Sequence record: OP292654.1
Length of the DNA: 64,000 nucleotides
Direction: 5' to 3' (one strand)
Shown piece by piece: positions 23,499 to 58,179 of the stretch (its first letter is position 1; each line of letters starts with the position of its first letter). The notes beneath the pieces were generated by a model that worked only from the letters and a program-made list of their open reading frames with translations, was not told where the DNA came from and did not search any database. Made by a program: the position numbers and the translations under genes.

Positions 23499-23854
23499 AA
23501 TCCAGAATTTATTCTGAACCAGAACTTACAGAAGAAGAAAAGAAAGAAATTGAACTTGAGAAAGAGAAATTAAAAGAGAATGCTTCACAGCTTTCTATCC
23601 TGCGTCAAGGTACTGTTACTGAGATTACTATGGGTGATAGAACTTTTCAGGTTACTGACCCTAAGCGTATTGAACAGGCTATTACTTTTATTGGACAGCA
23701 TGAGGAAGCATTATTCACTTTGCGTCAGCGTGTTAAAGAACAAACTTCAATAATCAAAATTATGGTTAATGATATTGCTACATTGAAGCAAGAAGTCCAA
23801 CGACTAAAGGAAATAACAAATGGATATGGATCACAAGAGTTCTCAAACTATTAA
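23495..23854 (+). CDS. Hypothetical coiled-coil protein
   Basis: ATGA-coupled ORF with heptad pattern. Confidence 0.7.
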   Translation: MKSRIYSEPELTEEEKKEIELEKEKLKENASQLSILRQGTVTEITMGDRTFQVTDPKRIEQAITFIGQHEEALFTLRQRVKEQTSIIKIMVNDIATLKQEVQRLKEITNGYGSQEFSNY

Positions 23855-24470
23855 TTATCGTAAAGCTAGAACTGATATTGATATTGACTTTAAAGATGGA
23901 AAGTCAGTGATTGAGCAACTTCCCTGTACTAGAAGTGTAGAGAAGATTACCGAAGATGGTTTGATTCCACATAATAGTGGTGTTCATTTTGATAATATAC
24001 CTGTAGACCCAATTAGTGGTTTAGCAAGCATACCATATAAAGAAGCCGAAAGATTAGGATACCAAAAAGTTGATATTCTGTCTCAATCGGCTTATGAGCA
24101 TGTGCGTGATAGGGATCATTTGAAAGAGTTGATGAACAAAGAGCCAGATTGGGATCTATTGTTAGTACCGGAATTCGTAGAAGAATTATCACAGATCAAA
24201 AAGCATATTACGTTGCTACATGTCTGGAAACCGAGAAGCATAGATGAATTAGCAATGTTTATTGCTATGATTCGCCCTGGTAAGCGTCAATGTCAGAGTA
24301 TGAATAGTTGGGATGAAGTAAGGGCAGTTATATGGGATTATGAGAGTATTGGTCTTGATGCTGAAGGTAAGAAGTTAAGATACTTCAAAAAGCCTCATGC
24401 ATACGCTTATAGTTTGATGATTGTGGTTCAATTAAACGCACTTGTCGAATATATTATTTCCTCTTCTTAA
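23820..24470 (+). CDS. DnaE/PolIII-alpha-like catalytic fragment (C-terminal part of split core)
   Basis: DIDIDF (DnaE PDFDVDF), HNSGV (HAGGV), KVDIL (KFDFL), MIRPG (LFRPG) and YFKKPHAYAY (YGFNKSHSAAY). Confidence 0.8.
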   Translation: MDMDHKSSQTINYRKARTDIDIDFKDGKSVIEQLPCTRSVEKITEDGLIPHNSGVHFDNIPVDPISGLASIPYKEAERLGYQKVDILSQSAYEHVRDRDHLKELMNKEPDWDLLLVPEFVEELSQIKKHITLLHVWKPRSIDELAMFIAMIRPGKRQCQSMNSWDEVRAVIWDYESIGLDAEGKKLRYFKKPHAYAYSLMIVVQLNALVEYIISSS

Positions 24471-24807
24471 GAGCAACATTTCGACGTTTAATGCGTTTAG
24501 TAGGTAGATCACTTAAAGAAATAACTGGACCGCTATGAACTTTCACTTGGTCAGTGTTAAATCGTTTGGTGTATGGTTCAAATTTTTCCATTTCTTCTTG
24601 CATGAATAAGCAAATAGGAATGGTTCGATTACTTTGCCACCACCAGTTATTAGCTAGTAATAGCAGTTCTTCTTGAAGGGATTCATCCATCTCAGAGAAG
24701 CAGTACAATGTCATGTATTGTTTACTTTTGATTTTGATAATCCCATAATAGATTATATCGTCGTGTTCAATTACTGTCACGAACGGATATGTTTTATATT
24801 CATTCAT
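24454..24807 (-). CDS. Conserved hypothetical protein
   Basis: Convergent ORF with WWWQSNR motif; - strand TAAATA at 24843-24848. Confidence 0.7.
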   Translation of the reverse strand: MNEYKTYPFVTVIEHDDIIYYGIIKIKSKQYMTLYCFSEMDESLQEELLLLANNWWWQSNRTIPICLFMQEEMEKFEPYTKRFNTDQVKVHSGPVISLSDLPTKRIKRRNVALKKRK

Positions 24808-24817
24808 AGGACTTCCA

Positions 24818-24848
24818 TAAATATTGTATAAATTGTATATTATATTTA
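24818..24848. promoter_or_regulatory. Divergent late-type promoters
   Basis: TAAATA on + at 24818-24823 and on - at 24843-24848, between divergent genes. Confidence 0.5.
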
Positions 24849-24860
24849 TAGAGGTTTAAC

Positions 24861-25832
24861 ATGGCACATCATGGCGTTTACATGTATCCTTATAACAATG
24901 AAGTTTCTTTAGGCAATTTTAATATGCCTTTTTCACAACAGAAACTAACCATTTATAGAGGTGCAAACAATCCACTTAGCTTTACTATTCATAATGCTGA
25001 TGGAAAATATACATTGATTAGTGATAATCAATATCTAGTGTTCAGCATCTTTGATGCACGTTCGGATACTAGAATCTTCGAGACAGTGCTTGATAAAGTA
25101 GAACCATCTTGGGTTTCTGAAGCTGGACAAGCACGACCAACTGTTAGTAATAAAGTTAAAGTCTACTATGGTTGTATAGTTCCGGCAGGAGTTATACAAG
25201 ACCTAAGTGTTGGTTCAAAATACCGTTGGAGTATTACGAAGGTTACAATGGATGGAGATCTAATTGAACCTACTGAGTACTTGTATACTGGATTGAACTA
25301 TGAAGCAAGTGCTGAATTAACAATCAGTAATCTTGCGGCTCCAACATTTACTCCAAGTGAAGAAATCAGTAAAGATAAGAATCCATCATATCTACCAATC
25401 AAAGATAAGGAACAAAAACCTATCTCTAATGGTATAATTGGTGAATTTGATGTATTGCATAGTTCTGCTATTCGTGCTGATGCTCAATATGGTTTAGTAG
25501 ATGGTTTAAGTACTATCGCATTTTATTTCAATAATTTCATTGGTAGGGTTCAACTACAAGGGTGTTTAGCAAATGAAACTCCTAAAGATGCGGAAGACTA
25601 TAAGTGGTTCATTATTAAGCTAGATGGTAACGAATACATTGAGAATGATTTTGATCCAAATGGTATTCCAATTCCATTAGAAGGAATTAGAGCATTTAAC
25701 TTCCAAGGACAACTTATGTGGGTTCGTGTTGTGGCTGCTATTCCACCTATTGTTAAAAATTACCCACCTAATGTAATCAAGAAAGATTACAATCCGTTGA
25801 ACACCATCCCTAAGATTCTGATTCGCAGATAA
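24861..25832 (+). CDS. Putative virion structural protein
   Basis: Beta-rich 323 aa; late-type promoter; IYRGANN motif recalls tail/baseplate proteins. Confidence 0.55.
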   Translation: MAHHGVYMYPYNNEVSLGNFNMPFSQQKLTIYRGANNPLSFTIHNADGKYTLISDNQYLVFSIFDARSDTRIFETVLDKVEPSWVSEAGQARPTVSNKVKVYYGCIVPAGVIQDLSVGSKYRWSITKVTMDGDLIEPTEYLYTGLNYEASAELTISNLAAPTFTPSEEISKDKNPSYLPIKDKEQKPISNGIIGEFDVLHSSAIRADAQYGLVDGLSTIAFYFNNFIGRVQLQGCLANETPKDAEDYKWFIIKLDGNEYIENDFDPNGIPIPLEGIRAFNFQGQLMWVRVVAAIPPIVKNYPPNVIKKDYNPLNTIPKILIRR

Positions 25833-25833
25833 A

Positions 25834-25862
25834 TGGAATGACTTGAAAAAATGTGGTATAAT
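25834..25862 (+). promoter_or_regulatory. Phage promoter TGGAAT-N17-TATAAT
   Basis: Matches the consensus; upstream of primase. Confidence 0.7.
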
Positions 25863-25894
25863 GATCGAAGTACTGACACAGACATAGGAAATGA

Positions 25895-26941
25895 ATGATG
25901 AATCAGATACAAGACATTATGGCATCAATTATGCACGACCCAGCACCAATTATGGATCGCTGGAGTCAACACAATTGCCCTGCTTGTGTTACAAGAGGGC
26001 AATCAAGACCTGATACTAAAGGACGTGGAAATCACATGTTCCGTAATGATGGTTCTGTCGTGTATAACTGTTTTAACTGTCACCTAAAAACAGTCTGGAC
26101 ACCTGGAAGATATGTAAGCAAGGATATGGAATCCTTGCTTCGTTCGTATGGTGCGTCAGATAAAGAAATGATTAGCATAAAGCTAATCGCAAAAGAAATG
26201 GTAGAAAGTGGAGATTACGAAGTACAAGATACTGCGGCATCAAAACTTTACCAGAAAATAGTACAGCGTGATTTGCCGTCAGATGCTAAACCTTTTCTAG
26301 AATGGGTGAATTCACCGAATATTCCACCAGAGTTCTTGAAAGTTGTTAACGCAGTTAATGACCGTAATCCGTATCTGTTGGACTTGAATCTGTACTGGAG
26401 TCCATCAAAAGAGTTCTACATGTTCCAACGGTTCATCATTCCGTATTACATGAATGGACAAATTATAGGTTATACTGCTCGTCACATTGACAAAGATAGC
26501 GAATATCGTTATCGGAACCAAGTGAGTACGAGCATTTTTTATAACTTCGATTTACTAAATGATGACAGGATGCAAACAATCCTGGTAGCAGAAGGTCCAA
26601 TTGACGCTGCGTTAATGGGTGGAATTTCTGCTAATAACTACTTCCTTAGTACTTCACAAATTGAATTGTTGAAGAAAGCCCAGGAACGTGGTAAAATGAT
26701 AGTTATAGTACCAGACCGTGATAAAGATGGTCTAGTAACAATTGAACAAGCTATCGAGCACGGATTCAGTGTAGCATTACCTGATTTCGGGGCTGTTCGT
26801 GATGGAGAGGGAATTCGTCACATTAAGGATTTTGATGAAGCATGTGCTAAGTATGGAAGATTGTTTTGTTTACAACTTCTACACAAGAGTATATACACTG
26901 ATAGATTCGACATAAGAGTACAAACTGAAAAATGGATTTGA
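25895..26941 (+). CDS. 61: DNA primase (gp61-like)
   Basis: Zn finger CPAC...CFNC; TOPRIM VAEGPIDA, VPDRDKDG and KDFDEA. Confidence 0.9.
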   Translation: MMNQIQDIMASIMHDPAPIMDRWSQHNCPACVTRGQSRPDTKGRGNHMFRNDGSVVYNCFNCHLKTVWTPGRYVSKDMESLLRSYGASDKEMISIKLIAKEMVESGDYEVQDTAASKLYQKIVQRDLPSDAKPFLEWVNSPNIPPEFLKVVNAVNDRNPYLLDLNLYWSPSKEFYMFQRFIIPYYMNGQIIGYTARHIDKDSEYRYRNQVSTSIFYNFDLLNDDRMQTILVAEGPIDAALMGGISANNYFLSTSQIELLKKAQERGKMIVIVPDRDKDGLVTIEQAIEHGFSVALPDFGAVRDGEGIRHIKDFDEACAKYGRLFCLQLLHKSIYTDRFDIRVQTEKWI

Positions 26942-26948
26942 GGTTTAA

Positions 26949-28448
26949 ATGGCAGTAAGTAACACGGACGTTAGAAAATACGATATTCAATATCAATTAT
27001 ATTTGCTACAGCAAATTTTTAGTACACCGGACTTGTATGTTCGTTGTAAGAATGTTTTAAAGCCGGATTATTTCGATAAGGAATATCATGCAAGCATTCA
27101 ATATGTACATGATTATTCATCAAAGTACAATGTTACTCCTACACTAAATGACATTAAACACAATGCAGATTTCGCGTACTCTGAAACTGTTGTACCTGAC
27201 TTGAACCAGCAAGCAGTACTAGACAGTATCGGAGAATTTTGTCGTCATAAAGCTCTAGCCCAAGCTATTCAGCAAGGAATGGAACTTGTGAACCAAAAAC
27301 GTTATGGTGGAATCGAAGAACTCATTCGTGAAGCTATGTTAGTAACTGTACAGAATGATATTGGTCTAGACATTTATGAAGATCCAGAATCGGTTATTCG
27401 TAAATTGGCAGAACAGCAAGGTACATTTAAATCTGGTTGGGAAACCTTTGACTATAAACTATTTGGTGGATTCGGTAAGCAAGAATTAGAAATCTTTGCT
27501 GCTGCGTCAGGTGGTGGTAAGTCAGTAGTACTCCAAAACTTAGCAGTTAACTTCAGTAAAGCTGGACTTAACGGTGCTTACATCACACTAGAACTAGCAT
27601 CTGAATTAGTTGCGGTTCGTATATACGGTATGATGGTCAACACAGCACAGAATAAAGTAAAAGTTGACATTGATGAAACTGCTGCTAAGGTCAAAATTGA
27701 GGAACGCAGTAATGGTAAATTGCGTATTCACCGCTTACCTGAATCTGTTAGTACTGTCAACGACATTGAAAGTTACATTCGTGAACTTCAAATCAAAACT
27801 GGCATTAAACTTGATTATGTTTGTGTGGATTATCTCGATCTGCTAACATCCGACCGTTGTGGACCAAACGACAAGTCAAATGCGTTTGTTAAAGATAAGT
27901 TCGTTTCCGAAGAACTTCGTGCTCTAGCTATGAAAATGGATCTAACTGTATTCACAGCTTGTCAGTTCAACCGTAGTGGTGTTGCTGGTGAAGATGTTAA
28001 ATCTCAAGCACAGATTGCGGGTGGTATTTCTAAGATTTATACTGCGGATAACGTAATTTACATTGATGCTCGTAAAGATCGTGGTGAAATGGTTTTTGAT
28101 TTCCAGAAAACACGTAACAGTTCAGCAGTAGGCTCTCGTTTAATCATGTCTTATGATATTGATTCACTTCGAGTACTAGATCATCCTAATACTGTTCAAG
28201 AAATGGAAATTAATACTAATTTCAAGCATACTGGTAAAGTGATGATTGGTAAAAGTAATGTATTCAGTACTCCACAAGCCCCAAGCGGTGCTATGAGTTC
28301 TCTACAGAACAAATTGACTACAGTTACACATAAACCTAGTACAAATGATGTACAAAATCACAGTACTACTGAATCTCAGGACATAAATACACCAAAGGCT
28401 GAGGATAAAGTTTCTAGTATGCGAAACTTTTTGAATGGTAGGATGTAA
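26949..28448 (+). CDS. 41: Replicative DnaB-like helicase (gp41-like)
   Basis: Walker A ASGGGKS, ITLEL, VDYLDL, TACQFNR and KTRNS. Confidence 0.93.
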   Translation: MAVSNTDVRKYDIQYQLYLLQQIFSTPDLYVRCKNVLKPDYFDKEYHASIQYVHDYSSKYNVTPTLNDIKHNADFAYSETVVPDLNQQAVLDSIGEFCRHKALAQAIQQGMELVNQKRYGGIEELIREAMLVTVQNDIGLDIYEDPESVIRKLAEQQGTFKSGWETFDYKLFGGFGKQELEIFAAASGGGKSVVLQNLAVNFSKAGLNGAYITLELASELVAVRIYGMMVNTAQNKVKVDIDETAAKVKIEERSNGKLRIHRLPESVSTVNDIESYIRELQIKTGIKLDYVCVDYLDLLTSDRCGPNDKSNAFVKDKFVSEELRALAMKMDLTVFTACQFNRSGVAGEDVKSQAQIAGGISKIYTADNVIYIDARKDRGEMVFDFQKTRNSSAVGSRLIMSYDIDSLRVLDHPNTVQEMEINTNFKHTGKVMIGKSNVFSTPQAPSGAMSSLQNKLTTVTHKPSTNDVQNHSTTESQDINTPKAEDKVSSMRNFLNGRM

Positions 28449-28449
28449 T

Positions 28450-28719
28450 ATGTCGAGTAAAAAGCACAATCTTCTGGATAGTATAGTTAACTATACATCA
28501 GACAAAGAAAAACTTCAAAGTTTAGGAAATCGTGCTGATCACGCAATAAATTCGATAATCAATCTGCTTGATAGCATCGACGAGGATTTCGATGAAGAAA
28601 CAGCAAACGATCTAACTAGACGTTTGTTTCTAAGTATTAAGAATCGTGACTATCGTAAATTCGAAAAGGGTTTAGAGAATCTTACCTTGGACGAAAAACG
28701 TAAGAACAAAGGTGAATAA
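28450..28719 (+). CDS. Hypothetical protein
   Basis: ATG at 28450 immediately after the helicase stop. Confidence 0.7.
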   Translation: MSSKKHNLLDSIVNYTSDKEKLQSLGNRADHAINSIINLLDSIDEDFDEETANDLTRRLFLSIKNRDYRKFEKGLENLTLDEKRKNKGE

Positions 28720-28720
28720 T

Positions 28721-28876
28721 ATGAAAAAGAAAAAAGTAAACGAAAATGCTTCTTCTGGTGCTACAAGTTCTGGTTCAATCGCATCTGTTAGTGGTGGACT
28801 TAACTATCCACTAATTACAAGAATGCCTAAATCGAATTTCTTCGGATACAAAGAATATAAAGGCAAAAAGGATTAA
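28721..28876 (+). CDS. Small 51-aa protein not in the ORF track (MKKKKVNENASSGATSSGSIASV...)
   Basis: ATG 28721 to TAA 28876 fills the gap exactly between neighbours; E-NASSGATS motif recalls T4-like virion proteins. Confidence 0.65.
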   Translation: MKKKKVNENASSGATSSGSIASVSGGLNYPLITRMPKSNFFGYKEYKGKKD

Positions 28877-28877
28877 C

Positions 28878-29276
28878 ATGACTTCTTATACATTTTACAC
28901 AATCAACACTGTAATTGACATTGGTGATGGTAGTACTCCAACAATTGTGAATGGAGAATTTACTGGTGCGATGAATTTGTCACGATTGCTGGAATGTGTT
29001 ATGGTATTCGACAGGCCAATGATGGTGAGTGTTGTTAAGACTGAAGTTGACTTGAGTAAGAACAATAATTCATCATTTTACAATCTTCCCAGTGCATGGG
29101 GAGAATGTGTTGTGAGTACTTTCAAATTCGCATTGCCAATGGATGTGGAATTATCAGTTAGTGGTGTACCTTTAGTACTACCAACGACCGTTAATGGAGC
29201 ACGTCTAACAAAATTCAACAGTACTACCTCTGAACGGAATATTAGTATTACTAAGCAAACCTTTTCCCGTACATGA
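28878..29276 (+). CDS. Hypothetical protein, possibly structural
   Basis: ORF abutting the upstream gene. Confidence 0.7.
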   Translation: MTSYTFYTINTVIDIGDGSTPTIVNGEFTGAMNLSRLLECVMVFDRPMMVSVVKTEVDLSKNNNSSFYNLPSAWGECVVSTFKFALPMDVELSVSGVPLVLPTTVNGARLTKFNSTTSERNISITKQTFSRT

Positions 29277-29282
29277 TAAATA
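29277..29282 (+). promoter_or_regulatory. Late-type promoter TAAATA
   Basis: GATAAATA upstream of the 29322-32305 cluster. Confidence 0.55.
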
Positions 29283-29321
29283 TCTTCATGTACAGAAAAG
29301 GTTTTTCTTTTTGGAGATAAT

Positions 29322-30248
29322 ATGGATATACAACAAACCGCACAGGAGCTTCAAAAGTTCGCAGATGCGAATGGTTTACAAATGGATGTAAACCAAGCCC
29401 TAAATGCTATGGATGCTGGTGATTTTGTAGAAATCAACCAAGCAATGGATAACTCAGACAATCGAGCTATCATGCAAGTACTACAAAAGTACAAAGCACA
29501 AATGAGCGAGAATTACAAACTTTTTGCTTCAAATAAGATTAATGAATCAGCAGAAGTGAACGCATTGAATACACTGACAGTAACTGAACTAGAAGAATTC
29601 TATAAAGCAAATTGTGCTTTTGCGTTGCGTGAAAATTCTCACCTAACACTTGCTGAAATCAAAACTTTAGTATTTGATGAATTAAATGAAGATATAACTT
29701 CACAATTGAATGCTAATCAAATAAACAAACAAAATACTGCTCAGCAGCAATCTCAGGTAAATCCGCAAACTGCTATTAAAATGAAGCAAGCTGATTTACA
29801 ACGTAATGCTTCTAATGCGAACTTTAAAGTATCAGTTCCAGGAAGTCAAGCTGGTAGTACTGAACTAGCTAATGTTGTTGGTGTTGATATTGGCCCAACT
29901 CCAGATAAAAGTTTAGTAGTTACTAAAGACCCATCTAAAGCTAACCAAGTAAATGTGTTTGGGTTAGATGACATTGAACCAGTTCAAGAAGATGATGAAC
30001 ATGATGAAGTGGATAATAGTGAGGGTGCTATTATGGCTCCTGAGCAACAAAGAAGTATTGAGCAATCATCTTCCCCACTTACTCATGAAAATCCAAGTCT
30101 AGGTAGACTATCACAGGCAATTGGTGATATTGAAGGTTCAGAAGATACTACTGGTGCTGAGTCACCACAAGGTAATGAAGGTATGCATGATGCTGATGAA
30201 ATTCTTTCTCAGATCATCGACTTCTGTTCAAGAATGAGAGGAAGATAA
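29322..30248 (+). CDS. Putative head/internal protein
   Basis: Acidic, Gln-rich; several (I/L)xE putative prohead-protease sites. Confidence 0.55.
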   Translation: MDIQQTAQELQKFADANGLQMDVNQALNAMDAGDFVEINQAMDNSDNRAIMQVLQKYKAQMSENYKLFASNKINESAEVNALNTLTVTELEEFYKANCAFALRENSHLTLAEIKTLVFDELNEDITSQLNANQINKQNTAQQQSQVNPQTAIKMKQADLQRNASNANFKVSVPGSQAGSTELANVVGVDIGPTPDKSLVVTKDPSKANQVNVFGLDDIEPVQEDDEHDEVDNSEGAIMAPEQQRSIEQSSSPLTHENPSLGRLSQAIGDIEGSEDTTGAESPQGNEGMHDADEILSQIIDFCSRMRGR

Positions 30249-30466
30249 TGAGATCGGTCGGTACAAATAAAGGTTTTACTATAATTGTATCAAATGAAGA
30301 ATACCGTCTCGTTAAGAAAATTGATGCAAATATTGAGATGCCAGTTGAGTACTTTGGAGAATACTATCAAGAGTTGGGTGAAAAACTAGTCTCTCGTGGA
30401 ATTCTAAATAAGGTAGAAAAAGATGGAACTGAATATTTTGTATCAATTAAAAGGAGTAAGCAATGA
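30248..30466 (+). CDS. Hypothetical protein
   Basis: TAATG-coupled ORF. Confidence 0.7.
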   Translation: MRSVGTNKGFTIIVSNEEYRLVKKIDANIEMPVEYFGEYYQELGEKLVSRGILNKVEKDGTEYFVSIKRSKQ

Positions 30467-31275
30467 GTGATGATTTCGGAGATTTCGAACACTATAAACA
30501 TGGTGTTGATCTAATGGGAGATATTCTTTCAGCATTCGATGACATTGAAGAAGGGAAGCCAGTACCAAAGAAACTGCCTGATGGTAGTACTTTTGTAAAT
30601 GACTTTGCTCAGGTGAATCTTGCTGAAACTAAAAATCTCTTACACGGTCTACAAGAACTGACCGGAGAATATGGTAATATTCAAGAAGAATCATTTTATG
30701 GTCAAGAATATGTAAACGTAGATTCTGACAATGATTATGATAGCATTTATGGTTATTATGAACCGCAACCTGGCGAAAACTTTATTGAAGACCCAATTGC
30801 CGTTCGTATGCGTCAGGTAAAACCACAAACACAACAACAGCAATCTCAACCTAGTACACCAGTACAACAAAATCGCCCATACGTTCCAGGAATGAATTGG
30901 GGTATTATTGAAGAATCGGTGCTTGGTATGAAGAATGCAAAAACATATAGCATAAAATGTTTAGCAACTAATCAAGTGGTTCTGGACAATATTATGATGT
31001 ATGAATCAGCTTTAGCATTACGTAATCTTCTAAACGCTGGTAGAACCTTAACTGATACTAAAGTACTTGGTATCATTAGTTCTGGTATTCAATACACTAC
31101 TGTCGTTAAGGAAGCTATAAAAGCTGCCAAAGAACGTCAGAATGTACTTAAAGAATCTAAGTATGATAAGGCTCAAGAACTTGATACAGTTATTGCTGAA
31201 CACAAGAAAAAAGCCCAAGACTTAAAGGCAAGAGTATTGAACTTCTTAAAAGAAGAAGGATTCATAACTAAATAA
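30463..31275 (+). CDS. Hypothetical protein, possibly structural
   Basis: ATGA-coupled ORF in a late cluster. Confidence 0.7.
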   Translation: MSDDFGDFEHYKHGVDLMGDILSAFDDIEEGKPVPKKLPDGSTFVNDFAQVNLAETKNLLHGLQELTGEYGNIQEESFYGQEYVNVDSDNDYDSIYGYYEPQPGENFIEDPIAVRMRQVKPQTQQQQSQPSTPVQQNRPYVPGMNWGIIEESVLGMKNAKTYSIKCLATNQVVLDNIMMYESALALRNLLNAGRTLTDTKVLGIISSGIQYTTVVKEAIKAAKERQNVLKESKYDKAQELDTVIAEHKKKAQDLKARVLNFLKEEGFITK

Positions 31276-31306
31276 GGATATAAATTTCATTTATAAGGAA
31301 ATAACA

Positions 31307-31957: not shown

Positions 31958-31969
31958 TCGGAGGGTTAT

Positions 31970-32331: not shown

Positions 32332-32344
32332 ATAGGAGTACAGG

Positions 32345-33046: not shown

Positions 33047-33047
33047 A

Positions 33048-48540: not shown

Positions 48541-50990
48541 TGCCAAGTAAAAGTAAAGCACAGGCACATTTAATGGCTGCTGCCGCTCATAATCCAGATA
48601 TTGCTAAAGATGCTGGAATTGATCAAAGTGTCGCTCATGATTTTAATAAAGCTGACGAGAAGGAAGGGAATCTTAAGAAAGGTTCAGATCTTCCATCTCA
48701 TGTATCAGAAGAAGTAGAGCTTGATGAAGCAAGTGGTGTTGGTATCATTAAAGTACCGCAAACTCTACTAAAACAAGTTCAAAAATATGTTGGTTCTGTT
48801 CTATTAACAATGGGTGTAATGAAACAACATGATTTACAAAATAAAGGTTACGAATCCGAATCTGAGGCACTACTAAATTTCCTCCGTAGATTCCAACGAA
48901 AATATGGGGCGTCAGTATTGACTCCTGTTGATTTAAAAAAATATATCAATAGTAGTACTAATTTACATATTGATACTGATGATTTGTATAACTCATTACC
49001 AGAGAATTTAAAAAAGAATCCACGAACTAAAGAATTGATTGATAATCTTACTATTAAGATGAAAATCAGTAATCAGTTCCTTGATAAAGGTGGTAGTAGT
49101 GCTGTACGTGGTACTCAAAATAATTTAGATTTAGGTATTCCATCTTATGAAGATATTAAGAATACTAATCTTGATGGTGTAGCTCGTTCGCTTAATTATG
49201 CTATTGGTACAGTGGAACATGAACTTCAACATACTATTCAACAAGTTGTTAATAGAAATTTAAATCCAAAAGATCAACAAGCACATCAGCATCCTGATTA
49301 TATTTCAGGAAAAGATCCAGAAGCATACTATCGTGGTGGTATTGAATTTGGCCCTCAAGTAAAAGATTTAGCTAACTTCGCAAATGAATGGCTTGAAGAA
49401 CATCCAGATTCGCTCACTGGTAACAAAAATACAGATATTTCTAAAGCAATCCAACATGTTTTAAGATCATTCCCACAGGCTAACTTGGTGAAAGAACTTA
49501 GAAAGTACAAAGAAGATGCTCGTGCTAACAAGGCAATGAAACTGATTTATCGTGAAGTTAGTAACTTCTATGATAATGAATTACATGCTGAAGATAATCA
49601 TGAGTTTGACAGTACTGAAAAAGATATTTCAGATGGACATGAATTTGAACGTGACCAGGAATATCCAGAAGCTGGTGATAGCCTGATGGGTGATTTGTAT
49701 TTGAAAGTATGGCGTGAATTTGGCGAACGTCCACACATTCATGGATTGAGTAACGCTCACGATCCTGAACAATTCACATTACGTGTTGATGGTGGTTATA
49801 CTCCATATAATTTAGTATTCCGTCATGGTCACAGAGATGATTATTTCATTCTTGTTCAACCAGATGATGGTGAGAAAATTCGTTTAGATTTTACTAAAGA
49901 GCAAATGGCTAAATTACCAGTTAACTATCTTGGCAATATGCGTGGTATTGAAGAACTACAAAAAATGATTGAACAAGAAAACGCACCTGATGCTAATCTA
50001 GAAGGTATGTTATTCGCAGTCGAGAATATCAATGAGAACGCAGGATTTTTCAATCGTGATAGTTCACGTAAAGTACAATTTGATGACTACGTACAAGAAG
50101 AAGGATTCTTTTTGGTACATATGGCAGATGTAAAAGCAAAAATTGTTTGCCAAACGTCAGGAAAAATGTATACTGTTGATATTGATGATGGTGAAAATAA
50201 TTTTATCGGTTCAGAAAAAGAAATCGAAGAATTGTTCACTAAGATTTTTGAAGCATATTATAATCCAGAAGTTCAACCACGCCACATAAACAAAGCATTA
50301 CAGTACTCAGAATCTATTGCTGATTTTGATGAATCATTAGCTTATTATGTTGAGCGTACTGCTAAACGTAAAGAACGTGGTGAAGCAGCTATGGCAGAAT
50401 CAAGTATGCGTGGTCTAGCAGACATTGTACAAAATGCTGAGCTAGAACATGACATGGATGATGCTGAAGAACAAGAGCTAATTAATAAAGGTGTTCTAGA
50501 AGAAATGCCACTTAAATATGATTCGTTTATGGGAATGGACCCACAAGTGTACGTAGATAAGGAAGCACAAGCTAATACACCAAAGAACATGACTCCAGTC
50601 AAGAATCATGGTGAGTGGACAACTTATCGTGGTCATGATGGATACATGGCATATGACAATGATACTGGTGAAGCAATCGCTACAGTTAAAGGTCATGTGG
50701 ATGAAGGATGGTTTAACGTTGATGTAACAGCTTCTAGCCGTTCGGTTAAAGGTGTAGTTTATCAAATGTTTATGGATATTGTTAAAGTTGAAGGTACTCC
50801 AATTTTGAGTGGACGCCTACAATCAGATGATGCCATAAAATTCTGGCAAAGACTAATTCAGTCACATAAAGTATATGTGGTTGCTAATGGTGAAGTACTA
50901 CAAGCTGCTACACCAGAAAAATTCCATAAGTACTGGAGTGATGAAGAAGGTTCGCCACAATCGCAGTTCCAACTTTTACTAGTCAAATAA
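48540..50990 (+). CDS. Multidomain putative virion protein: HExxH zincin-like domain and C-terminal GNAT-like domain
   Basis: HELQH at 49218-49232; paralogous to the upstream gene; C-terminal QSDDAIKFWQRL resembles GNAT motif B. Confidence 0.5.
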
Positions 50991-50999
50991 AGGCAAAAT

Positions 51000-51371
51000 A
51001 TGATAACCACGATTTTTATCTTACTATTCGTGTACCAAATTAAACATCTACTATGTGATTACTTTTTCCAAGGTCGTTACATGCTAGGTAAATTCAAAGA
51101 AGAAGGGTGGGAACTACCACTAACAGCACATGCTGCCACGCACCTTGTAGGTACGTTGTTGATAGCTTTGTGTGCTGGTGCTACAACACAGATAGCTATC
51201 GCTGTAGCACTACTTGATTTTGGAATACATTTTGTGGTTGATAAAATCAAAGTCGAGGCATCTCGCAGTACTGATCATAGTAAGCCCGAATTCTGGTGGT
51301 ACTTAGGTATTGACCAGATGGCTCACCATATTACACACTACGTGATAATCGCTATATTGGTTCTACTATAA
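51000..51371 (+). CDS. DUF3307-family membrane protein
   Basis: HLLCDYFFQ, HFVVDKIK and GIDQMAHH. Confidence 0.8.
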   Translation: MITTIFILLFVYQIKHLLCDYFFQGRYMLGKFKEEGWELPLTAHAATHLVGTLLIALCAGATTQIAIAVALLDFGIHFVVDKIKVEASRSTDHSKPEFWWYLGIDQMAHHITHYVIIAILVLL

Positions 51372-51375
51372 ATAT

Positions 51376-51406
51376 TAACGACGCAGAGATGCGTCGTTAT
51401 TTTTTT
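51376..51406 (+). terminator. Intrinsic terminator
   Basis: TAACGACGCA-GAGA-TGCGTCGTTA-TTTTTTT. Confidence 0.8.
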
Positions 51407-51434
51407 GGAACAAAGAAACAATTTATGCTATAAT
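51406..51434 (+). promoter_or_regulatory. Phage promoter TGGAAC-N17-TATAAT
   Basis: Matches the consensus; upstream of topoisomerase. Confidence 0.7.
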
Positions 51435-51465
51435 GCAATGGCTAAGAAACAAAAAGGAATTTGAA

Positions 51466-53451
51466 ATGGCAAAGGAAAAGAAAAGTTCTGTTCTCGCTGA
51501 ACATGGTGTACAGCAATTAACTGAATATCAACATGCTCGTATCCGTACTGAAATGTATTTGGGTTCGAAGTCTGAACACGAACAACCTGTACTTCTCTTT
51601 GGAGAAGAAGGTTTCAATGTGCAAAACTTAGGTTGGGTTCCTGCCCTACTAACATCTTTCCGCGAAATCGTGGATAACTCACTGGATGAATTCGTAAAAG
51701 CTGGTACACGAGATCCAGTACTGAAAGTTCAGTATAATCCTGATGAATTAGAATTTGAAATTAGCGATAACGGTCGTGGTATTCCAATCGACTATGTACC
51801 AGAAACACAGAAACATGTGTGTACTATGGTTCTAACCGAAATGAAAACTGGACGTAACTTTAACGATGATGAACGTACTAACGTTATCGGGATGAACGGC
51901 TTAGGTGGTTCAGTAGTTATGATCGTATCCGAGAAAGCTGAAATCGAAATTCATCGTGCAGGTAAACCGTACAAAACCGATAAAGCCAACTCTGAATATG
52001 ATGGTACATATAAATTTACTCAAAAGTTCACTGAGGGTACGACAATGTTCCCTGAACTTGGTATTAATGAACCTAGTATTCGAAAAATACAAGCAGATAA
52101 AACTGGCACTACAGTACGATTCAAAATAAGTAAAGAAGTATTCAAAGTACATACTTTACCATTAGAACTCGTATATAGTATCCTTAAAGAAATCGCAGCA
52201 GCGAATCCATCATACAAAATTTTCTTGAATGGTGAACGTATTGTGATTCCGAAGAAAGGTCTATTCTCTGCTAATAAAAACACCATGACATTAAAAGTGG
52301 AAGATACTGAAATTGGTTTTGACAGTACTTTCTATATTGTTCCTGGTGTAGTTGAAGGACTAAGCACCAACTTACATATGCAAGGTCTAGTAAACAACGC
52401 ACCATCTTTAGAAGGTGGTACACACTTAGATACTTTCCAGAAGAAATTTGCTCTAGGAGTAATTAAAGCTCTGGAACGTGAAACTAAGAAACGCAAACTA
52501 ACGCCCAATCGTTCTGATGTTGAAGAAGGCTTGTTGATTTATAACATCACTAAGATGAATACACCAACATTCAACTCACAAATCAAAACGAAGCTAACTA
52601 ATGAAAATGTAATTAAACCAGTACAAAACGCAATGACTGATGAATTCTTTGCTGACCTTGTTAAGAAAAACAAGGATTGGGTAGAAGACATTTATGCTCG
52701 TTGTGCGGAACGTACTAATAAGAAAGATGCCGATGAAGATCGAAAGATGGCTAAACGTTTACTTAAAGGTAAAGTAGCTAAACTTCGTGATGCTAACGGT
52801 TCTGACCGTTCTAAATGTATTCTTCTTATCGCAGAGGGTGATTCCGCAGTATCTTCAATGACTGCTGCTAGGAACTCTGAAATTCATGGTATTCTACCTA
52901 TGCGTGGTAAACCACAAAACGTAAGTGGGAAGGAAAAAACAAAAGACCTAATGGGAAAGACAGATGATAAGCCATCAGCTATTCAAGACATTATGGCATC
53001 TCTAAATTTAATTCCCGGAGAAAAAGCTATTCGTGAAAATCTTCATTTCGGTAAACTATATGTTTGTGCTGATGAAGATGAAGATGGTAAGAACATTGGT
53101 GCTCTTGTAGTTAACTTCTTCTATAAATTTTGGCCTGAATTATTCCAAGATCCAGAAAATCCATTTATCTATATTTTCAAGACTCCATTCATTATCCTTG
53201 AGAAAGGTAAAGAAACGAGTTACTTCTATGGTCATAATGTCCATGAATACAATCCTGATGATTGGAAAGGTTGGAAAGCGACACGTGCTAAAGGTCTAGG
53301 TACTCTTGAAGTATCTAACTTCCGTGATGCTCTAACTAACGGTGTAGCTGTTCCAATTATTGATGATGGCACTCTAGGTGAAACCCTAGATTTGATCTTC
53401 AATAAAGAACGAGCTGATGATCGTAAAGATTGGACTCGTGAACAGGAATAA
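51466..53451 (+). CDS. Type II topoisomerase ATPase/TOPRIM subunit (gp39+60-like)
   Basis: EIVDNSLDE, DNGRGIP, GMNGLGG, AEGDSA, PMRGK, DEDEDG and KGLGT. Confidence 0.95.
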   Translation: MAKEKKSSVLAEHGVQQLTEYQHARIRTEMYLGSKSEHEQPVLLFGEEGFNVQNLGWVPALLTSFREIVDNSLDEFVKAGTRDPVLKVQYNPDELEFEISDNGRGIPIDYVPETQKHVCTMVLTEMKTGRNFNDDERTNVIGMNGLGGSVVMIVSEKAEIEIHRAGKPYKTDKANSEYDGTYKFTQKFTEGTTMFPELGINEPSIRKIQADKTGTTVRFKISKEVFKVHTLPLELVYSILKEIAAANPSYKIFLNGERIVIPKKGLFSANKNTMTLKVEDTEIGFDSTFYIVPGVVEGLSTNLHMQGLVNNAPSLEGGTHLDTFQKKFALGVIKALERETKKRKLTPNRSDVEEGLLIYNITKMNTPTFNSQIKTKLTNENVIKPVQNAMTDEFFADLVKKNKDWVEDIYARCAERTNKKDADEDRKMAKRLLKGKVAKLRDANGSDRSKCILLIAEGDSAVSSMTAARNSEIHGILPMRGKPQNVSGKEKTKDLMGKTDDKPSAIQDIMASLNLIPGEKAIRENLHFGKLYVCADEDEDGKNIGALVVNFFYKFWPELFQDPENPFIYIFKTPFIILEKGKETSYFYGHNVHEYNPDDWKGWKATRAKGLGTLEVSNFRDALTNGVAVPIIDDGTLGETLDLIFNKERADDRKDWTREQE

Positions 53452-53463
53452 ATGTAATTATTA

Positions 53464-53490
53464 GTGGGGAACATGAATGTTCCCCGTATT
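53464..53490 (+). terminator. Hairpin between topoisomerase genes
   Basis: GGGGAACAT-GA-ATGTTCCCC; weak U-tract. Confidence 0.45.
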
Positions 53491-53507
53491 AACAAAGAGG
53501 CAATGGA

Positions 53508-54923
53508 ATGCGTAAATCAACTAAAAAAACCCAATCTGAAATTGTACCAAATGCTCTAACTCTGTTAGACTATGGTAGTTCAGAATATATCAATCAATCA
53601 TCCCTAGAATATGCTTTGAGCACTTTTGATCGTGCTCTACCTGGAATTGATGGATTTAAAAACTCACAGCGTAAAGCTATCTTCACACTGAGTAAAGTAA
53701 GTGGTGAAATCAAAACTGTATCTTGTGCTGGTCGTATGATTAGCGATGGTATCTATCTTCATGGTGATGCTTCTGCTAGTGGTACTCTACAAAACCTAGC
53801 AAGTCCAGTTGTGAATAACTATCCTCTTATCGGTAAGCGTGGAGGTTTTGGTACACAGGTTAATCCTGAGCCAGCAAGCCCACGTTATACATATGTGAAG
53901 AAAACTAAACTCACTGAAGCTTTAGTACTTCGTGATATGGATGTAGTACCGATGCAAGAAAACTATGACGGTACTACAATGGAACCTAAGTTCTTTCTAC
54001 CAATTATTCCACTAGCACTACTTGGTGTTGATGGTACAGCTACCGCATATAAAAGTTTTATCTTCCCATATCGTATGAACGAAATCATTGAGAATACTCT
54101 CCGTGCTATCCGTGGTGAAGAACTTTTAGAAATGATGCCGTACTACGCGAGTTATGGTGCGAACGATTATGTTGAAGACCGTGGAGAAGGTAAATATACT
54201 TTCTTTGGAAAAGCTGAAGTAATCGATGCAAGTACTGTTCGTATTACTGGCTTAGCTCCACGTATGAAACTAGAAAAATTCGTTGAAGACTTGATCGCAA
54301 TGGAAGATTCAGGTAAAATTCGTAGTTATGATGATAACAGTTCTGGTAAAGTTGACATTACCATAAAACTACCACGTGGTCTTTCGGCTTCATGGTCAGA
54401 AATGGATGTGCTTCAGTATTTTGACATTTCAACAAAATTAGCACATACCCTCAATGTTTTAGGTGAAAACGGAAAAGTAAAAAGTTACAACACCGTTCAG
54501 GAGATAATCCAGGACTTCGTTCAGTTCCGATTCAAATACTACATCAAGCGTTATGAAAAACTTCTAGCTGATGCTGACGCAGAAGTGCGTTACAAAATTT
54601 TAGTAAAAGAATGTTTCGATAATGACATGACTGTAAAGATCAAAGAATTTGAGAACCGTGCTGAAGTTGTTGACTTCGTAACATCACTGAATGGTGAAAT
54701 TGAAGCATCAGATGAAAACATTCAGAACATTGTGAACTTCGCAGCGTATCGTTGGACTAAAGAAAACTACGTTAAGGTAAATCAAGAAATTGAAGATGCT
54801 TTAGCGAAGATGGATGAATACAGTGATTTGCTACAGAACCACGACAAGATTTGGAAGATTTACGAAGAAGAACTCGTAGAACTTCTCAACATGAATATCG
54901 TCTATAAAGAAGACGATGAATGA
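53508..54923 (+). CDS. 52: Type II topoisomerase cleavage subunit (gp52-like)
   Basis: DGFKNSQRK, YLHGDAS and ASPRYT (catalytic Tyr). Confidence 0.93.
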   Translation: MRKSTKKTQSEIVPNALTLLDYGSSEYINQSSLEYALSTFDRALPGIDGFKNSQRKAIFTLSKVSGEIKTVSCAGRMISDGIYLHGDASASGTLQNLASPVVNNYPLIGKRGGFGTQVNPEPASPRYTYVKKTKLTEALVLRDMDVVPMQENYDGTTMEPKFFLPIIPLALLGVDGTATAYKSFIFPYRMNEIIENTLRAIRGEELLEMMPYYASYGANDYVEDRGEGKYTFFGKAEVIDASTVRITGLAPRMKLEKFVEDLIAMEDSGKIRSYDDNSSGKVDITIKLPRGLSASWSEMDVLQYFDISTKLAHTLNVLGENGKVKSYNTVQEIIQDFVQFRFKYYIKRYEKLLADADAEVRYKILVKECFDNDMTVKIKEFENRAEVVDFVTSLNGEIEASDENIQNIVNFAAYRWTKENYVKVNQEIEDALAKMDEYSDLLQNHDKIWKIYEEELVELLNMNIVYKEDDE

Positions 54924-54926
54924 TTT

Positions 54927-54956
54927 TAAGGACGCTTCGGCGTCCTTTATTTTTAA
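54927..54956 (+). terminator. Intrinsic terminator
   Basis: AAGGACGC-TTCG-GCGTCCTT-T-rich. Confidence 0.85.
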
Positions 54957-55008
54957 TTAAGGCCATTGAATAAATACGACAAAGCTTTTTATGTTTTGGA
55001 GATTAGAT

Positions 55009-57378
55009 ATGGCAAACTTCGAACCCCAATGGGATTTGATCGCTGACACCAATACAATTCAAGAAGGACAAACCACGTATTTTAGACTACGTTTGAAAAA
55101 AAGTCAATCAACTTCACCCAACAATACATATGTTTTAGCAGATGACCAGTACTTGGAATTTACCTATAATATAGTCGGGGCAGGTGAGACTTTAGAAGAA
55201 CGAGATTTTATAGTTACGGTAGGTGAAAGTACTTCTTCATTAGTTCCAATTGGCAACGCAGGAACTGGCTCAACCTCTATTCAAGGTACACACGTTGTAA
55301 AATTCAATACTAACTCATATGATTTAAGTACTGTTTCTTATATTGATGCTTACTACTTTAAGATAGAATGTCCACAAGATGGAATTTGGGATGGTCCAGA
55401 ATCATTAACATTTAATATTGACAGCATCAATGTAATTACATTACTAGATGGTCAAGTAGCAAATACGCTACCGAGCGGTGTTCTCGGAACAACTTCAAGT
55501 ACTTTGAATTATAACACCACAAACGAAGTCTGGTTAACACCAGGATTGACAACACATGGCTCTAACCTGTATACTATTGGTGGTGTAGGTTATGGTGCTG
55601 AAAGTCGTCTTTTCGTACAAGCATTCGGAAGAAGTCAAACAATAAGCGGAAATACGAATGTATTCATGCCAGCATATGAAGTACTGACTATTCTTGATTC
55701 AGAAAAACCCAACACTCATATTACTGGTTCAGGTACAATCTTAGTTCCAGATTTAAGTGCTGGTCTAATTGAAGAAATACCATTACTGGTTAAAGATAGT
55801 ACTGGAAACCTTGTTAATACTGGATTAAAATTCAATGGTAACAATGGTCAAATTCTTCAAACTATGCTTTATGATTCAGACCCAATTGATGCTTATATAA
55901 AGATTCGTGTTGTTTCAGTTAAGCGTTTTTACAATACAGAAGCTGATGCTTATTATGTTGGTAAACGTTTCCGTGCGTATCATACTTGGGTAGCACCATC
56001 CGATACATCGGACTTCCATGAAGAACCAACAAGTGGTCATTTATATCAATTAAAAGATACCACAACATATCCATATGTTGTTGGTGAAGAAACCTTTGAA
56101 GGTAATTCTGTTATTTCCTACGATCCAAATAAATGGTACGATCTAGGTATCTATAACGAATCTCTAGGTTCAGGAATTATCAACAGTACTAGAATCTTTC
56201 GTGTTATTCTTAATGATAATACCGGTTCTGATTTATCATTTGAAACTGATTCCAATTTAGGTACTATTCACGTTGGTGAATATTTTGGTCATACAGTTTA
56301 TCCCAAAATTGTTGCTAGTGGTTCAGACCTTGTAACTTATGAAATCAATGAAAGTACTTCACCGAATGATATTCGTAAGTACGGATTAGATTTAAGTGCT
56401 GATGGCTTAATGATTGGTACAGCATATGCTTTAAGTTCAGATTTCTCAGCTAATGATGATATTAAACTTGAGTTTGATGTAGTCGCTACTGGAAAAAATG
56501 GTAAATCCTTAACACAACGTTTCAATATTACTATTGTTCGTGGTTTTGGACAGAATTTTATTAGTGCTGATATTCAACCTTCTTTAACTATGGAACGTAC
56601 ATGGTTTAACACAATCAGTACTACAGCGTTTAGCCAAGCTCAGTACTATCGTGCGTCTGATCCACGTTTTGGTATTCGTAAAATTCCTCGAATTCTTCTT
56701 AAAGAGAATTATGTTGATACAACCAAAAATTGGCCTGGTATCAAACAAACTGTTACTAATATAAGAAACGGTATTGTAAACACAACTAGTGGTGCTCCAA
56801 CTCCTGACGGTTCATTCCGTTTAGTACTAGGGAATTATAAGGTTCGTTCTGCCCTTGACAATATCGGCAATGTACTGTATGATGTACTGTACCGTGAAGT
56901 ACATCCTGAAGGAACTCAAGTCAGTCTTAGTTTAAATCCATTAGTTTACACTGATTATAGTAACTCTATCATTTCTGAAATCTTCGGTTTACGTCAAAAT
57001 GTTTACTTAGTTTTAGGTGAAGATACAGTAAACTTATTAACCGACCCAACAGATCTAAATAACCGTGGAATCGTAGTAGATGCTATTGGTGGGTTATCTG
57101 ATGAAATGATTGATACTGTACCACGCTTCATGAACCATCCTTATGTAGAAGATAACATTCAACCAGAATACTTCCCAGGAATTGTAGTAGCTTACTTACA
57201 ACCAGGGCAGGGTGAATCATTCTTTAATACACTAATTCAGAATAATGAACATGGTGCGTTATTGAATTATGAGTTTGAAGTTACTGGAGTAGAATTCAGC
57301 TACTATGTACAAGATAATGCTCGTTACGAGCGTGAAAACTTTACGGCAACTTTAAAAGTGCCAAATCTATTTCAATAA
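55009..57378 (+). CDS. Putative baseplate/tail structural protein
   Basis: Large beta-rich Ser/Thr/Gly protein with Ig-like segments; TAAATA at 54971-54976. Confidence 0.6.
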   Translation: MANFEPQWDLIADTNTIQEGQTTYFRLRLKKSQSTSPNNTYVLADDQYLEFTYNIVGAGETLEERDFIVTVGESTSSLVPIGNAGTGSTSIQGTHVVKFNTNSYDLSTVSYIDAYYFKIECPQDGIWDGPESLTFNIDSINVITLLDGQVANTLPSGVLGTTSSTLNYNTTNEVWLTPGLTTHGSNLYTIGGVGYGAESRLFVQAFGRSQTISGNTNVFMPAYEVLTILDSEKPNTHITGSGTILVPDLSAGLIEEIPLLVKDSTGNLVNTGLKFNGNNGQILQTMLYDSDPIDAYIKIRVVSVKRFYNTEADAYYVGKRFRAYHTWVAPSDTSDFHEEPTSGHLYQLKDTTTYPYVVGEETFEGNSVISYDPNKWYDLGIYNESLGSGIINSTRIFRVILNDNTGSDLSFETDSNLGTIHVGEYFGHTVYPKIVASGSDLVTYEINESTSPNDIRKYGLDLSADGLMIGTAYALSSDFSANDDIKLEFDVVATGKNGKSLTQRFNITIVRGFGQNFISADIQPSLTMERTWFNTISTTAFSQAQYYRASDPRFGIRKIPRILLKENYVDTTKNWPGIKQTVTNIRNGIVNTTSGAPTPDGSFRLVLGNYKVRSALDNIGNVLYDVLYREVHPEGTQVSLSLNPLVYTDYSNSIISEIFGLRQNVYLVLGEDTVNLLTDPTDLNNRGIVVDAIGGLSDEMIDTVPRFMNHPYVEDNIQPEYFPGIVVAYLQPGQGESFFNTLIQNNEHGALLNYEFEVTGVEFSYYVQDNARYERENFTATLKVPNLFQ

Positions 57379-57389
57379 GGGGGATGTGT

Positions 57390-57701
57390 ATGTTCCATCC
57401 ATTTTTTGATTCTTCTTCTTTAAGTAATCAAGAGCTTTATGATAAAATCAATGAAGTCTCAATGCGTATTTCATCAGCACGAGTTGCTGGTGTACAATAT
57501 GAAATTATACAGCAAATGTTCTCTGTCATTCGTTCATGCGAAGAAGAACTTCGAACTCGCCAAGCAAGGGCTGATTTAGAAGCTCAACAGAAAGAAGCAG
57601 ATAACAAAACTGTATTTGATTCGGACAGTTATATTAACACTGGAACTGAAGATAAGAAGAATGAAAGTACAAGGAAATCGAACTATAAGCGAGGATGGTG
57701 A
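57390..57701 (+). CDS. Hypothetical protein
   Basis: ORF after the structural gene; coiled-coil. Confidence 0.7.
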   Translation: MFHPFFDSSSLSNQELYDKINEVSMRISSARVAGVQYEIIQQMFSVIRSCEEELRTRQARADLEAQQKEADNKTVFDSDSYINTGTEDKKNESTRKSNYKRGW

Positions 57702-58179
57702 CGTTCGCTTAGATCTGAACGCAGTTGTTTATGCTATTAATTGCGGAGCAGATATAACCTATATTCAACTTAATGAACAGGATGAAGCTGAACGATTAAA
57801 GTTCAATGATAACTGTAGAAAGTTCGGATTAGAAGAACGTATGCTAGATTACACTATAGAACATGATAAAAACCATGAACTGTGGCGTTATGATCCAGCT
57901 TATGATAAAATCAATCTAGAAGACTATTTTCTCAATTTGTGTAGTACCGATGTTCAACGTGAACGAGTACTATATGAATTGGGATTATACGAAAGCTATA
58001 ACATGACTAAACTACTTCGCTGTATGATATGGCTAGTAGATTATCTGAAAGAACATAATATCTTTTGGGGTTTAGGTCGTGGAAGTTCAGTGAGCAGCTA
58101 TTGTCTATTTCTGATAGAACTACACATGGTAGATTCTATTAAATACGACTTAGATGTTAACGAATTTTTGAAATGGTAA
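57661..58179 (+). CDS. DnaE/PolIII-alpha-like fragment (N-terminal part of split core)
   Basis: ERVLYEL...WGLGRGSSVSSYCLFLIELHMVDSIKYDL..EFLK corresponds to DnaE ERLETEL...[35 protein letters not shown]. Confidence 0.85.
   Translation: MKVQGNRTISEDGDVRLDLNAVVYAINCGADITYIQLNEQDEAERLKFNDNCRKFGLEERMLDYTIEHDKNHELWRYDPAYDKINLEDYFLNLCSTDVQRERVLYELGLYESYNMTKLLRCMIWLVDYLKEHNIFWGLGRGSSVSSYCLFLIELHMVDSIKYDLDVNEFLKW

Follow-up and report, generated by a model that had tools for sequence, protein, structure and literature searches.

Why hundreds of large phages with a T4-like replisome built around a family B DNA polymerase (PolB) keep a second, bacterial-type polymerase is the question raised by a 64,000-nucleotide stretch of the Xanthomonas phage XbC2 genome (hereafter, the window, approximately positions 186001–250000 of the 368-kb record OP292654.1). 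XbC2 is a Mimasvirus of the Rak2/GAP32 group, and an earlier note on the window had proposed that two open reading frames (ORFs) 34 kb apart hold the core of DnaE, the alpha subunit of bacterial DNA polymerase III (Pol III). Both ORFs are present on the plus strand, at 57661–58179 and 23820–24470, with 33.8 kb between them. We are close to certain that they encode a split minimal Pol III alpha, consisting of an N subunit of 172 amino acids (aa; 57661–58179) and a C subunit of 216 aa (23820–24470). With moderate confidence, we read the pair as a poorly processive accessory DNA polymerase, obligately made of two subunits, that operates in the phage replisome beside the T4-like PolB. The XbC2 annotation lists both genes as “hypothetical protein” (the C part is XbC2_283), and RefSeq labels both orthologs in phage GAP32 “DNA polymerase” (GAP32_282 for the C part and GAP32_323 for the N part).

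The N subunit was recognized from Pfam, PHROG, and DnaE profile alignments. It matches PF07733 (DNA_pol3_alpha) above the curated cut-off with an expectation value (E) of 3.4e-8, and phrog_11127 with E 6.6e-85. The N-family profile aligns with residues 322–396 of Escherichia coli DnaE (hhalign probability 87%, E 4e-6), a result also obtained by hmmsearch against the PDB. The mechanical ORF opens at a TTG codon at 57616; the homologs, of 172 aa, begin at the position of the ATG at 57661, and the C-terminus (...NEFLKW) is the equivalent of ...FERFLNP in DnaE. Homolog starts and the DnaE alignment therefore agree with the start at 57661 and the FERFLN-like end given in the earlier note. Palm strand 1, the nucleotide-binding GS motif, and the helices that flank it come from the N subunit. 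The GS motif G139-R140-G141-S142-S143 (58075–58089, plus strand) corresponds to E. coli G361-R362-G363-S364-G365. Residue counts, here and below, are based on 282 C-family and 94 N-family sequences. A total of 93 N-part homologs were found, and GRGSS is kept in 92/92 of those aligned, while R102 and E106 are present in 94/94 members of the N family. In E. coli, R362, G363, and S364 contact the incoming deoxyguanosine triphosphate (dGTP), and the R362A enzyme is dead (bioRxiv 10.64898/2026.06.29.735100).

The C subunit carries palm strands 2 and 3 with the catalytic carboxylates and a cut-down fingers domain. It was identified by its match to phrog_11778 “DNA polymerase” (E 1.7e-108), by colinear DnaE motifs, and by its structure model; its Pfam match is sub-threshold only. 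When the C-family profile was searched against the PDB, the best sequences were DnaE proteins, led by Mycobacterium tuberculosis DnaE1 (E 0.035) with four motifs colinear. On the plus strand, these motifs are the metal-binding strand D19-I-D21-I-D23 (23874–23888; E. coli D401-F-D403-V-D405), K83-V84-D85 (24066–24074; E. coli K553-F-D555, the primer-phosphate lysine and the third catalytic aspartate), R152-P153-G154 (24273–24281; E. coli R639-P640-G641), and F189-K-K-P-H193 (24384–24398; E. coli F756-N757-K758-S759-H760), the helix-loop-helix of the deoxynucleoside triphosphate (dNTP) pocket. In the alignments, DIDIDF falls on the PDxDxDF strand of the M. tuberculosis and E. coli proteins, GYQKVD...RPG on E. 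coli residues 546–642, and FKKxHAxxY on residues 756–764. The earlier note had placed DIDID and KVD at exactly these coordinates, and the RPG and FxKxH motifs that it listed map to E. coli residues 639–641 and 756–760. RPG of E. coli DnaE contacts the templating nucleotide (bioRxiv 10.64898/2026.06.29.735100), and H760 is a proposed steric gate against ribonucleoside triphosphates, reported to be invariant in Pol III alpha (PMC8485763).

The AlphaFold model of the C part (predicted local distance difference test, pLDDT, 90.9) points in the same direction, as its top 10 Foldseek matches in the PDB are all DnaE (best E 1.5e-3, probability 1.0). Single-sequence searches of the PDB with either part returned nothing relevant, and profiles were required. 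Conservation of the catalytic aspartates proved to be almost complete in the C family: D19 is kept in 261/261 sequences, D21 in 260/261, D23 in 255/261, and D85 in 272/273. The same holds for K83 (273/273), R152 (255/258) and P153 (255/257) of RPG, and H193 (246/251) and K190 (241/251) of the pocket motif. Within the family, the HxxG motif is also conserved (H51 in 264/265 and G54 in 262/265). Catalytic and substrate-binding residues are near-invariant down to approximately 35–40% identity, and between XbC2 and GAP32 the ratio of nonsynonymous to synonymous substitution rates (dN/dS) comes to 0.023 (C part) and 0.037 (N part). Two proteins share the resulting active site, the N protein bearing the GS motif and the C protein the three aspartates; in E. 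coli, the GS motif and the carboxylates form one dGTP pocket (bioRxiv 10.64898/2026.06.29.735100).

The break between the two proteins falls at contiguous positions of DnaE, as the earlier note had described, and separates the helix of the GS motif from the DxD strand. In 86/92 N-part homologs, the protein terminates 0–2 aa past EFLK, and many C-part homologs begin 1–5 aa before DxDxD (1–18 preceding residues over the full range). At least 590 C-part loci and at least 495 N-part loci were found in IMG/VR, from which the best 80 loci per half (160 in total) were examined, with counts limited by contig ends. Among these, no C-part frame reaches more than 49 codons upstream, and all N-part frames finish no more than 9 residues from EFLK. 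The split is kept in all isolates and in the 160 IMG/VR loci. Cyanobacterial dnaE, a split gene whose product is joined by a split intein, provides a precedent for halves that are linked covalently by trans-splicing. At the phage junction, however, an intein could not be accommodated given where the N parts end and the C parts begin, the homologs have no conserved Cys/Ser/Thr nucleophile pattern there, and the Pfam scan of either part yielded no intein family match. Trans-splicing of the two phage proteins is accordingly hardly credible.

A few relatives encode both parts as one chain. An exhaustive profile search gave 563 matches, nearly all of which are standalone proteins of 190–215 aa that open at DxDxD; it also gave a 375-aa and a 336-aa protein with continuous N and C halves. 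The 375-aa fusion has two further relatives with 78–81% identity from independent samples, which makes three fusion clusters of 375–376 aa and one of 336 aa (P0285, P0364, P0365, and P0341); one fused gene lies on a Logan contig from SRR16020819 (L003:519–1649). The first fusion group sits within the gene block that usually surrounds the C part, with the small antisense gene of that block downstream (L003). In P0341, the third residue of DxDxD is Glu. In a quick maximum-likelihood tree of 141 family members (with support from the Shimodaira–Hasegawa-like approximate likelihood ratio test only), the fused forms fall in two separate positions, both within groups of split forms, so the fusions look secondary. 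They are the best available evidence for the two halves acting together. Two candidates were rejected: P0377 and P0378 (PHP plus palm, 540–551 aa), considered as intermediates, are contig-end fragments of ordinary DnaE, and the gene directly upstream of a distant C part, considered as an adjacent N part separated by a split or frameshift, encodes a C2H2 protein.

For a natural fused homolog, AlphaFold gives one compact domain (pLDDT 90, predicted template modelling score 0.88). Its top 18 Foldseek matches in the PDB are all DnaE or PolC (E 4e-8 to 3e-4), with the next match at E > 3; for these 18, the query-normalized template modelling score is 0.45–0.58, a value that refers to a predicted model. 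In the mixed MAFFT alignment used for the fusion model, the last 10 N-part residues were misplaced onto DxDxD, and the junction (pLDDT 66 around residue 185) is not to be over-read.

Co-occurrence of the two genes is strict, with both present in every group of phages that was checked. Searches by tblastn recovered 96 phage records for the C part and 103 for the N part, with counts per host genus (C/N) of 34/34 for Escherichia, 11/11 for Pseudomonas, 8/8 for Erwinia, and 8/8 for Salmonella; all listed genera are equal or off by one. The surplus N matches, among those visible, are weak and fall on records annotated as Pol III alpha or on short unannotated contigs. Both genes are present in Rak2-like and PA5oct-like phages, Atu_ph07, XacN1, RsoM2USA, CM1/RAS14, and Slickus01, and the orthologs include those of GAP32, CBB, RaK2, 121Q, PA5oct, Atu_ph07, and XacN1. 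The spacing varies: the C gene is upstream in Rak2-likes (approximately 31–34 kb) and PA5oct-likes (44 kb), and the N gene is upstream in XacN1 and CM1/RAS14 (15 kb each), RsoM2USA (4.8 kb), and Atu_ph07 (182 kb). Alishewanella phage Slickus01, with a genome of 141.6 kb (below the jumbo threshold), carries the pair as well, at a distance of 11 kb. In the annotation of Slickus01, PolB takes up two neighboring “DNA polymerase” ORFs (L169:2558–4261 and 4261–5196).

Outside phages, the family is almost absent. Among 185,579 species-representative cellular genomes, there was one C-subunit match, on a 38-kb contig of a Candidatus Dojkabacteria metagenome-assembled genome (L172, JANWZV010000008.1). 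This contig is probably a mis-binned phage contig; the antisense and C2H2 genes that usually neighbor the C part were not found on it within the profile thresholds. A single match on this scale agrees with the description of the enzyme as phage-specific.

The earlier note had also stated how little of DnaE is left, and the comparison bears this out. The two parts total 388 aa compared with 1160 aa for E. coli DnaE. Neither part matches the PHP domain (PF02811) at E ≤ 1, and the N part aligns only from E. coli residue 322 onward. In the C part, residues 24–75 (approximately 52 residues) stand in place of E. coli 406–545 (approximately 140 residues), and the thumb is gone; Lamers and colleagues reportedly placed the boundaries of the E. 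coli thumb, in 2006, at residues 433–510. The index finger (E. coli 642–742) is gone, with approximately 16 residues in its place, and the C part stops approximately 20 residues past the H760 helix (near E. coli 780). Neither part has beta-clamp-binding, HhH, OB, or tau-binding domains. Further DnaE pieces (thumb, PHP, and OB) were sought in the window and among the conserved neighbors of the two genes, and PDB profile searches with the conserved neighbors gave a C2H2 finger for one protein, nothing for the others, and no DnaE domain.

Several observations weigh against an accessory polymerase made of these two proteins. Sequence alone supports the C part only marginally, both in the PDB profile search (the E of 0.035 given above) and in the alignment of its profile to the single E. 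coli DnaE sequence, which hit the correct region with an hhalign probability of 3.9%; its identity has therefore rested on the colinear motifs and the structure. The thumb, the index finger with its dNTP contacts (E. coli R709, K714, and K715), and all processivity modules are missing. E. coli R390, a palm arginine near the incoming dNTP whose replacement by alanine lowers catalytic efficiency 27-fold (bioRxiv 10.64898/2026.06.29.735100), has a Glu equivalent in the N part (E168, window positions 58162–58164) and in 88/92 N homologs. Near E168, position 171 is K or R in 91/92 sequences, and K171 might substitute for the lost arginine. Moreover, the partner half lies within 10 kb in 0/160 IMG/VR loci, so operon-level support is lacking, which is unusual for obligate partners. 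Finally, any specific role is read from the gene neighborhood only.

The distance between the genes, their placement in different gene blocks, and their adjacency in none of the 160 loci could also be taken to mean that the halves are relics of a broken dnaE, each kept for a separate non-catalytic job such as a scaffold or regulator. The CBB genome paper, which noted the N part alone, described it as a “truncated” Pol III alpha (PMC5259590). Relics of this kind would not be expected to keep near-invariant catalytic residues at such low identity under a dN/dS of 0.02–0.04, nor does the explanation account for the strict co-occurrence of the halves or the independent natural re-fusions, and we regard it as very improbable.

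A different objection accepts the heterodimer and questions its chemistry. Pol-beta-fold enzymes are functionally diverse, and on this view only the Pol-beta-like palm would be used. With the thumb, index finger, and DNA-clamping modules gone, the R390 equivalent changed to Glu, and the phage already equipped with a complete PolB, its primase, and a separate DnaQ-like exonuclease, the pair could be a nucleotidyltransferase with a non-replicative function, such as untemplated tailing, primer synthesis, production of a nucleotide signal, or modification of DNA or nucleotides. However, RPG and FxKxH with its steric-gate histidine are near-invariant and would be needless for a template-independent enzyme. 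The structural matches are solely to replicative C-family polymerases, with CCA-adding or TUTase-type enzymes appearing only at E > 3, and both genes lie within replication blocks. A non-replicative nucleotidyltransferase thus seems unlikely. The earlier note had inferred a non-covalent heterodimer with a new role, listing priming, untemplated addition, and nucleotide modification among the options. Its heterodimer is upheld by indirect evidence (the composite site, co-occurrence, purifying selection, and fusions); for the new roles we found no evidence, and the kept RPG and steric gate together with the replication blocks favor templated synthesis instead. A templated DNA polymerase with a role in replication or repair is, on balance, somewhat better supported than not, and each specific role taken singly is doubtful.

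How, then, might two such proteins make one polymerase? In the proposed mechanism, the N subunit would contribute the first palm strand, the GS loop (R140-G141-S142), and helices, and the C subunit would contribute the strand bearing DxDxD, the K-x-D strand that holds the third aspartate, and the reduced fingers with RPG and the steric-gate histidine. Since the split divides the Pol-beta-like palm sheet, each protein by itself lacks part of the active site, and the two subunits would have to associate non-covalently to be active. An active heterodimer is quite probable. Because PHP, thumb, index finger, clamp-binding, and OB modules are absent, such an enzyme would on its own be a poorly processive templated polymerase. 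The retention of RPG and the steric-gate histidine, combined with the placement of the genes in replication blocks, points to templated DNA synthesis, and the most likely job may be short-patch synthesis tied to priming, lagging-strand, or recombination-dependent replication.

The gene blocks themselves are distinct for the two halves. In the best 80 C-part loci, the conserved order is UvsW (61/80), a 167-aa protein (63/80), a 281-aa protein (69/80), a C2H2 zinc-finger protein (77/80), the C subunit (80/80), a convergent 117-aa protein (79/80, with the 80th contig ending there), a primase (60/80), and a DnaB-like helicase (47/80). In the N block, the N subunit is followed by a 119-aa protein (80/80) and then by the clamp loader (70/80). 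Each half of the polymerase thus has its own deeply conserved replication block, and the position of each gene inside such a block is what suggests an accessory polymerase of the phage replisome.

Within the C block of XbC2, the gene for the 117-aa protein (phrog_11637; 24454–24807, minus strand) converges on the C subunit gene, the last 17 nt of which are shared by both. In the IMG/VR loci the two genes usually lie within 40 nt of each other, and the 117-aa gene also adjoins the natural fusion (L003) and the C part of Slickus01. It is the only antisense gene of the conserved block, and its product has a WWW motif and a basic KRIKRR tail; sequence and profile searches against the PDB gave no match for it. 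The 117-aa protein is a possible accessory partner of the C subunit. A sigma-70-like site (GTGCCA-17-TATAAT, 10/12 matches) occurs just upstream of the 117-aa gene at 24839–24867 on the minus strand; such sites are no more numerous in the region than expected from shuffled sequence. On the upstream side of the C subunit gene, a 238-aa protein (phrog_11058; 22782–23498, plus strand) has an N-terminal C2H2 zinc finger (profile match to C2H2 fingers at E 3.5e-7) in which C15, C18, H31, and C33 are invariant, and an unassigned C-terminal domain. In XbC2, a gene annotated as a 119-aa “virion structural protein” (23495–23854) lies between the C2H2 gene and the C subunit gene. The 119-aa protein of the N block (phrog_14844; 58224–58583, plus strand) is encoded downstream of the N subunit gene.

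These neighbors allow a more ambitious proposal, in which the pair would provide catalysis within a larger, dedicated complex, with the C2H2, 117-aa, and 119-aa proteins replacing the thumb and DNA-binding modules. Such a complex could work with the primase and helicase as a primer-extension or lagging-strand-initiation polymerase and hand off to PolB, a division of labor that would resemble DnaE and PolC in Bacillus or Pol alpha and Pol delta in eukaryotes. We give this proposal a low probability and retain the simpler two-subunit accessory polymerase.

The wider window is rich in replication and nucleotide metabolism genes, with virion genes interspersed. Its replication genes include those for PolB, gp32, UvsX, UvsW, the primase, the DnaB-like helicase, and the clamp loader, and a ribonucleotide reductase, Dda, a two-subunit type II topoisomerase, and a DnaQ-like exonuclease are also encoded. 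The PolB is complete (1009 aa; 2657–5686, plus strand), has its own exonuclease domain (PF00136 with E 3.8e-21 and PF03104 with E 1.2e-20), and is presumed to be the main replicase. The presence of this PolB means that the split enzyme is not the main replicase, in line with the earlier note, which had judged the pair an unlikely replicase from the PolB replisome and the primase. The primase (25895–26941; phrog_47, E 6.7e-35), the DnaB-like helicase (26949–28448; DnaB_C, E 3.2e-16), and the gp44-like clamp loader (59257–60210; identified by Pfam clamp loader matches) are all on the plus strand.

A standalone DnaQ/epsilon-like exonuclease (18559–19434, plus strand), consisting of an RNase_T domain and a C-terminal extension of approximately 100 aa, coexists with the PolB that has an exonuclease domain of its own. 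This protein could be the proofreader of the minimal Pol III. Its gene is found no more than 10 kb from either half in Rak2-like loci only (2/80 and 4/80). Elsewhere in the window, two adjacent plus-strand ORFs, 11904–12593 (229 aa) and 12595–14244 (549 aa), carry the same XbC2 annotation, terminase large subunit, and the second bears Terminase_6N/6C domains; together, they may represent another split gene.

The earlier note had called for a literature check on the split, which showed that it is not new. A comparative genomics study by Iyer et al. (2021; Viruses 13:63, PMC7824862) reported a split minimal Pol III alpha in their “group 2.2” jumbo phages. It consists of an N-terminal NTP-binding protein and a C-terminal Mg2+- and template-binding protein encoded by distant genes, is phage-specific, and accompanies a family B polymerase without other Pol III domains. 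The authors suggested that it may cooperate with PolB in the synthesis of one strand or in repair, and they regarded the minimal enzyme as a model of the ancestral form (PMC7824862). The XbC2 genome paper does not mention the split polymerase, and no experimental study of the enzyme was found in the literature, including that on phages of its group. The present case is a rediscovery. As far as the accessible parts of Iyer et al. (2021) extend, the additions not seen there are the residue-level counts, the structure-based confirmation, the derived natural fusions, the occurrence of the pair in a 141-kb phage, the two synteny blocks, and the near-universal antisense neighbor.

The value of the locus is thus that of a well-defined experimental target, in a family abundant in phages, rather than that of a discovery. 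If active, the pair would be the smallest known C-family polymerase and a natural active site rebuilt across two polypeptides by palm-sheet complementation. It would then define the minimal needs of DnaE-type catalysis and bear on the origin of the bacterial replicase.

Compared with known systems, the XbC2 enzyme is the same in kind as the group 2.2 enzyme: both have distant genes for N and C halves, a PolB with a T4-like replisome, and a genome of the Rak2/GAP32/Atu_ph07 type. With the cellular DnaE and PolC enzymes (PDB 2HNH, 2HPI, 4IQJ, 5LEW, and 3F2B), it shares the Pol-beta-like palm, the GS motif, DxD, the K553/D555 pair, RPG, and the H760 helix; it differs from DnaE in consisting of two polypeptides of 388 aa in total, in the Glu at the R390 equivalent, and in the many absent domains. 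Cyanobacterial split DnaE resembles it in that a dnaE-type gene is found in two distant pieces. However, in cyanobacteria each half bears an intein fragment and splicing yields full-length DnaE, whereas the phage halves are without an intein, are separated within the palm immediately ahead of the catalytic strand, and make up a minimal core. The separately encoded beta/beta' pieces of the phiKZ-like RNA polymerases offer a likeness of another sort, as there too a polymerase is rebuilt from separately encoded fragments of what cells make as a single chain (PMC7824862). The phiKZ-like enzyme, which belongs to a different enzyme superfamily, is discussed as extensively studied, whereas no experimental support was found for the phage Pol III.

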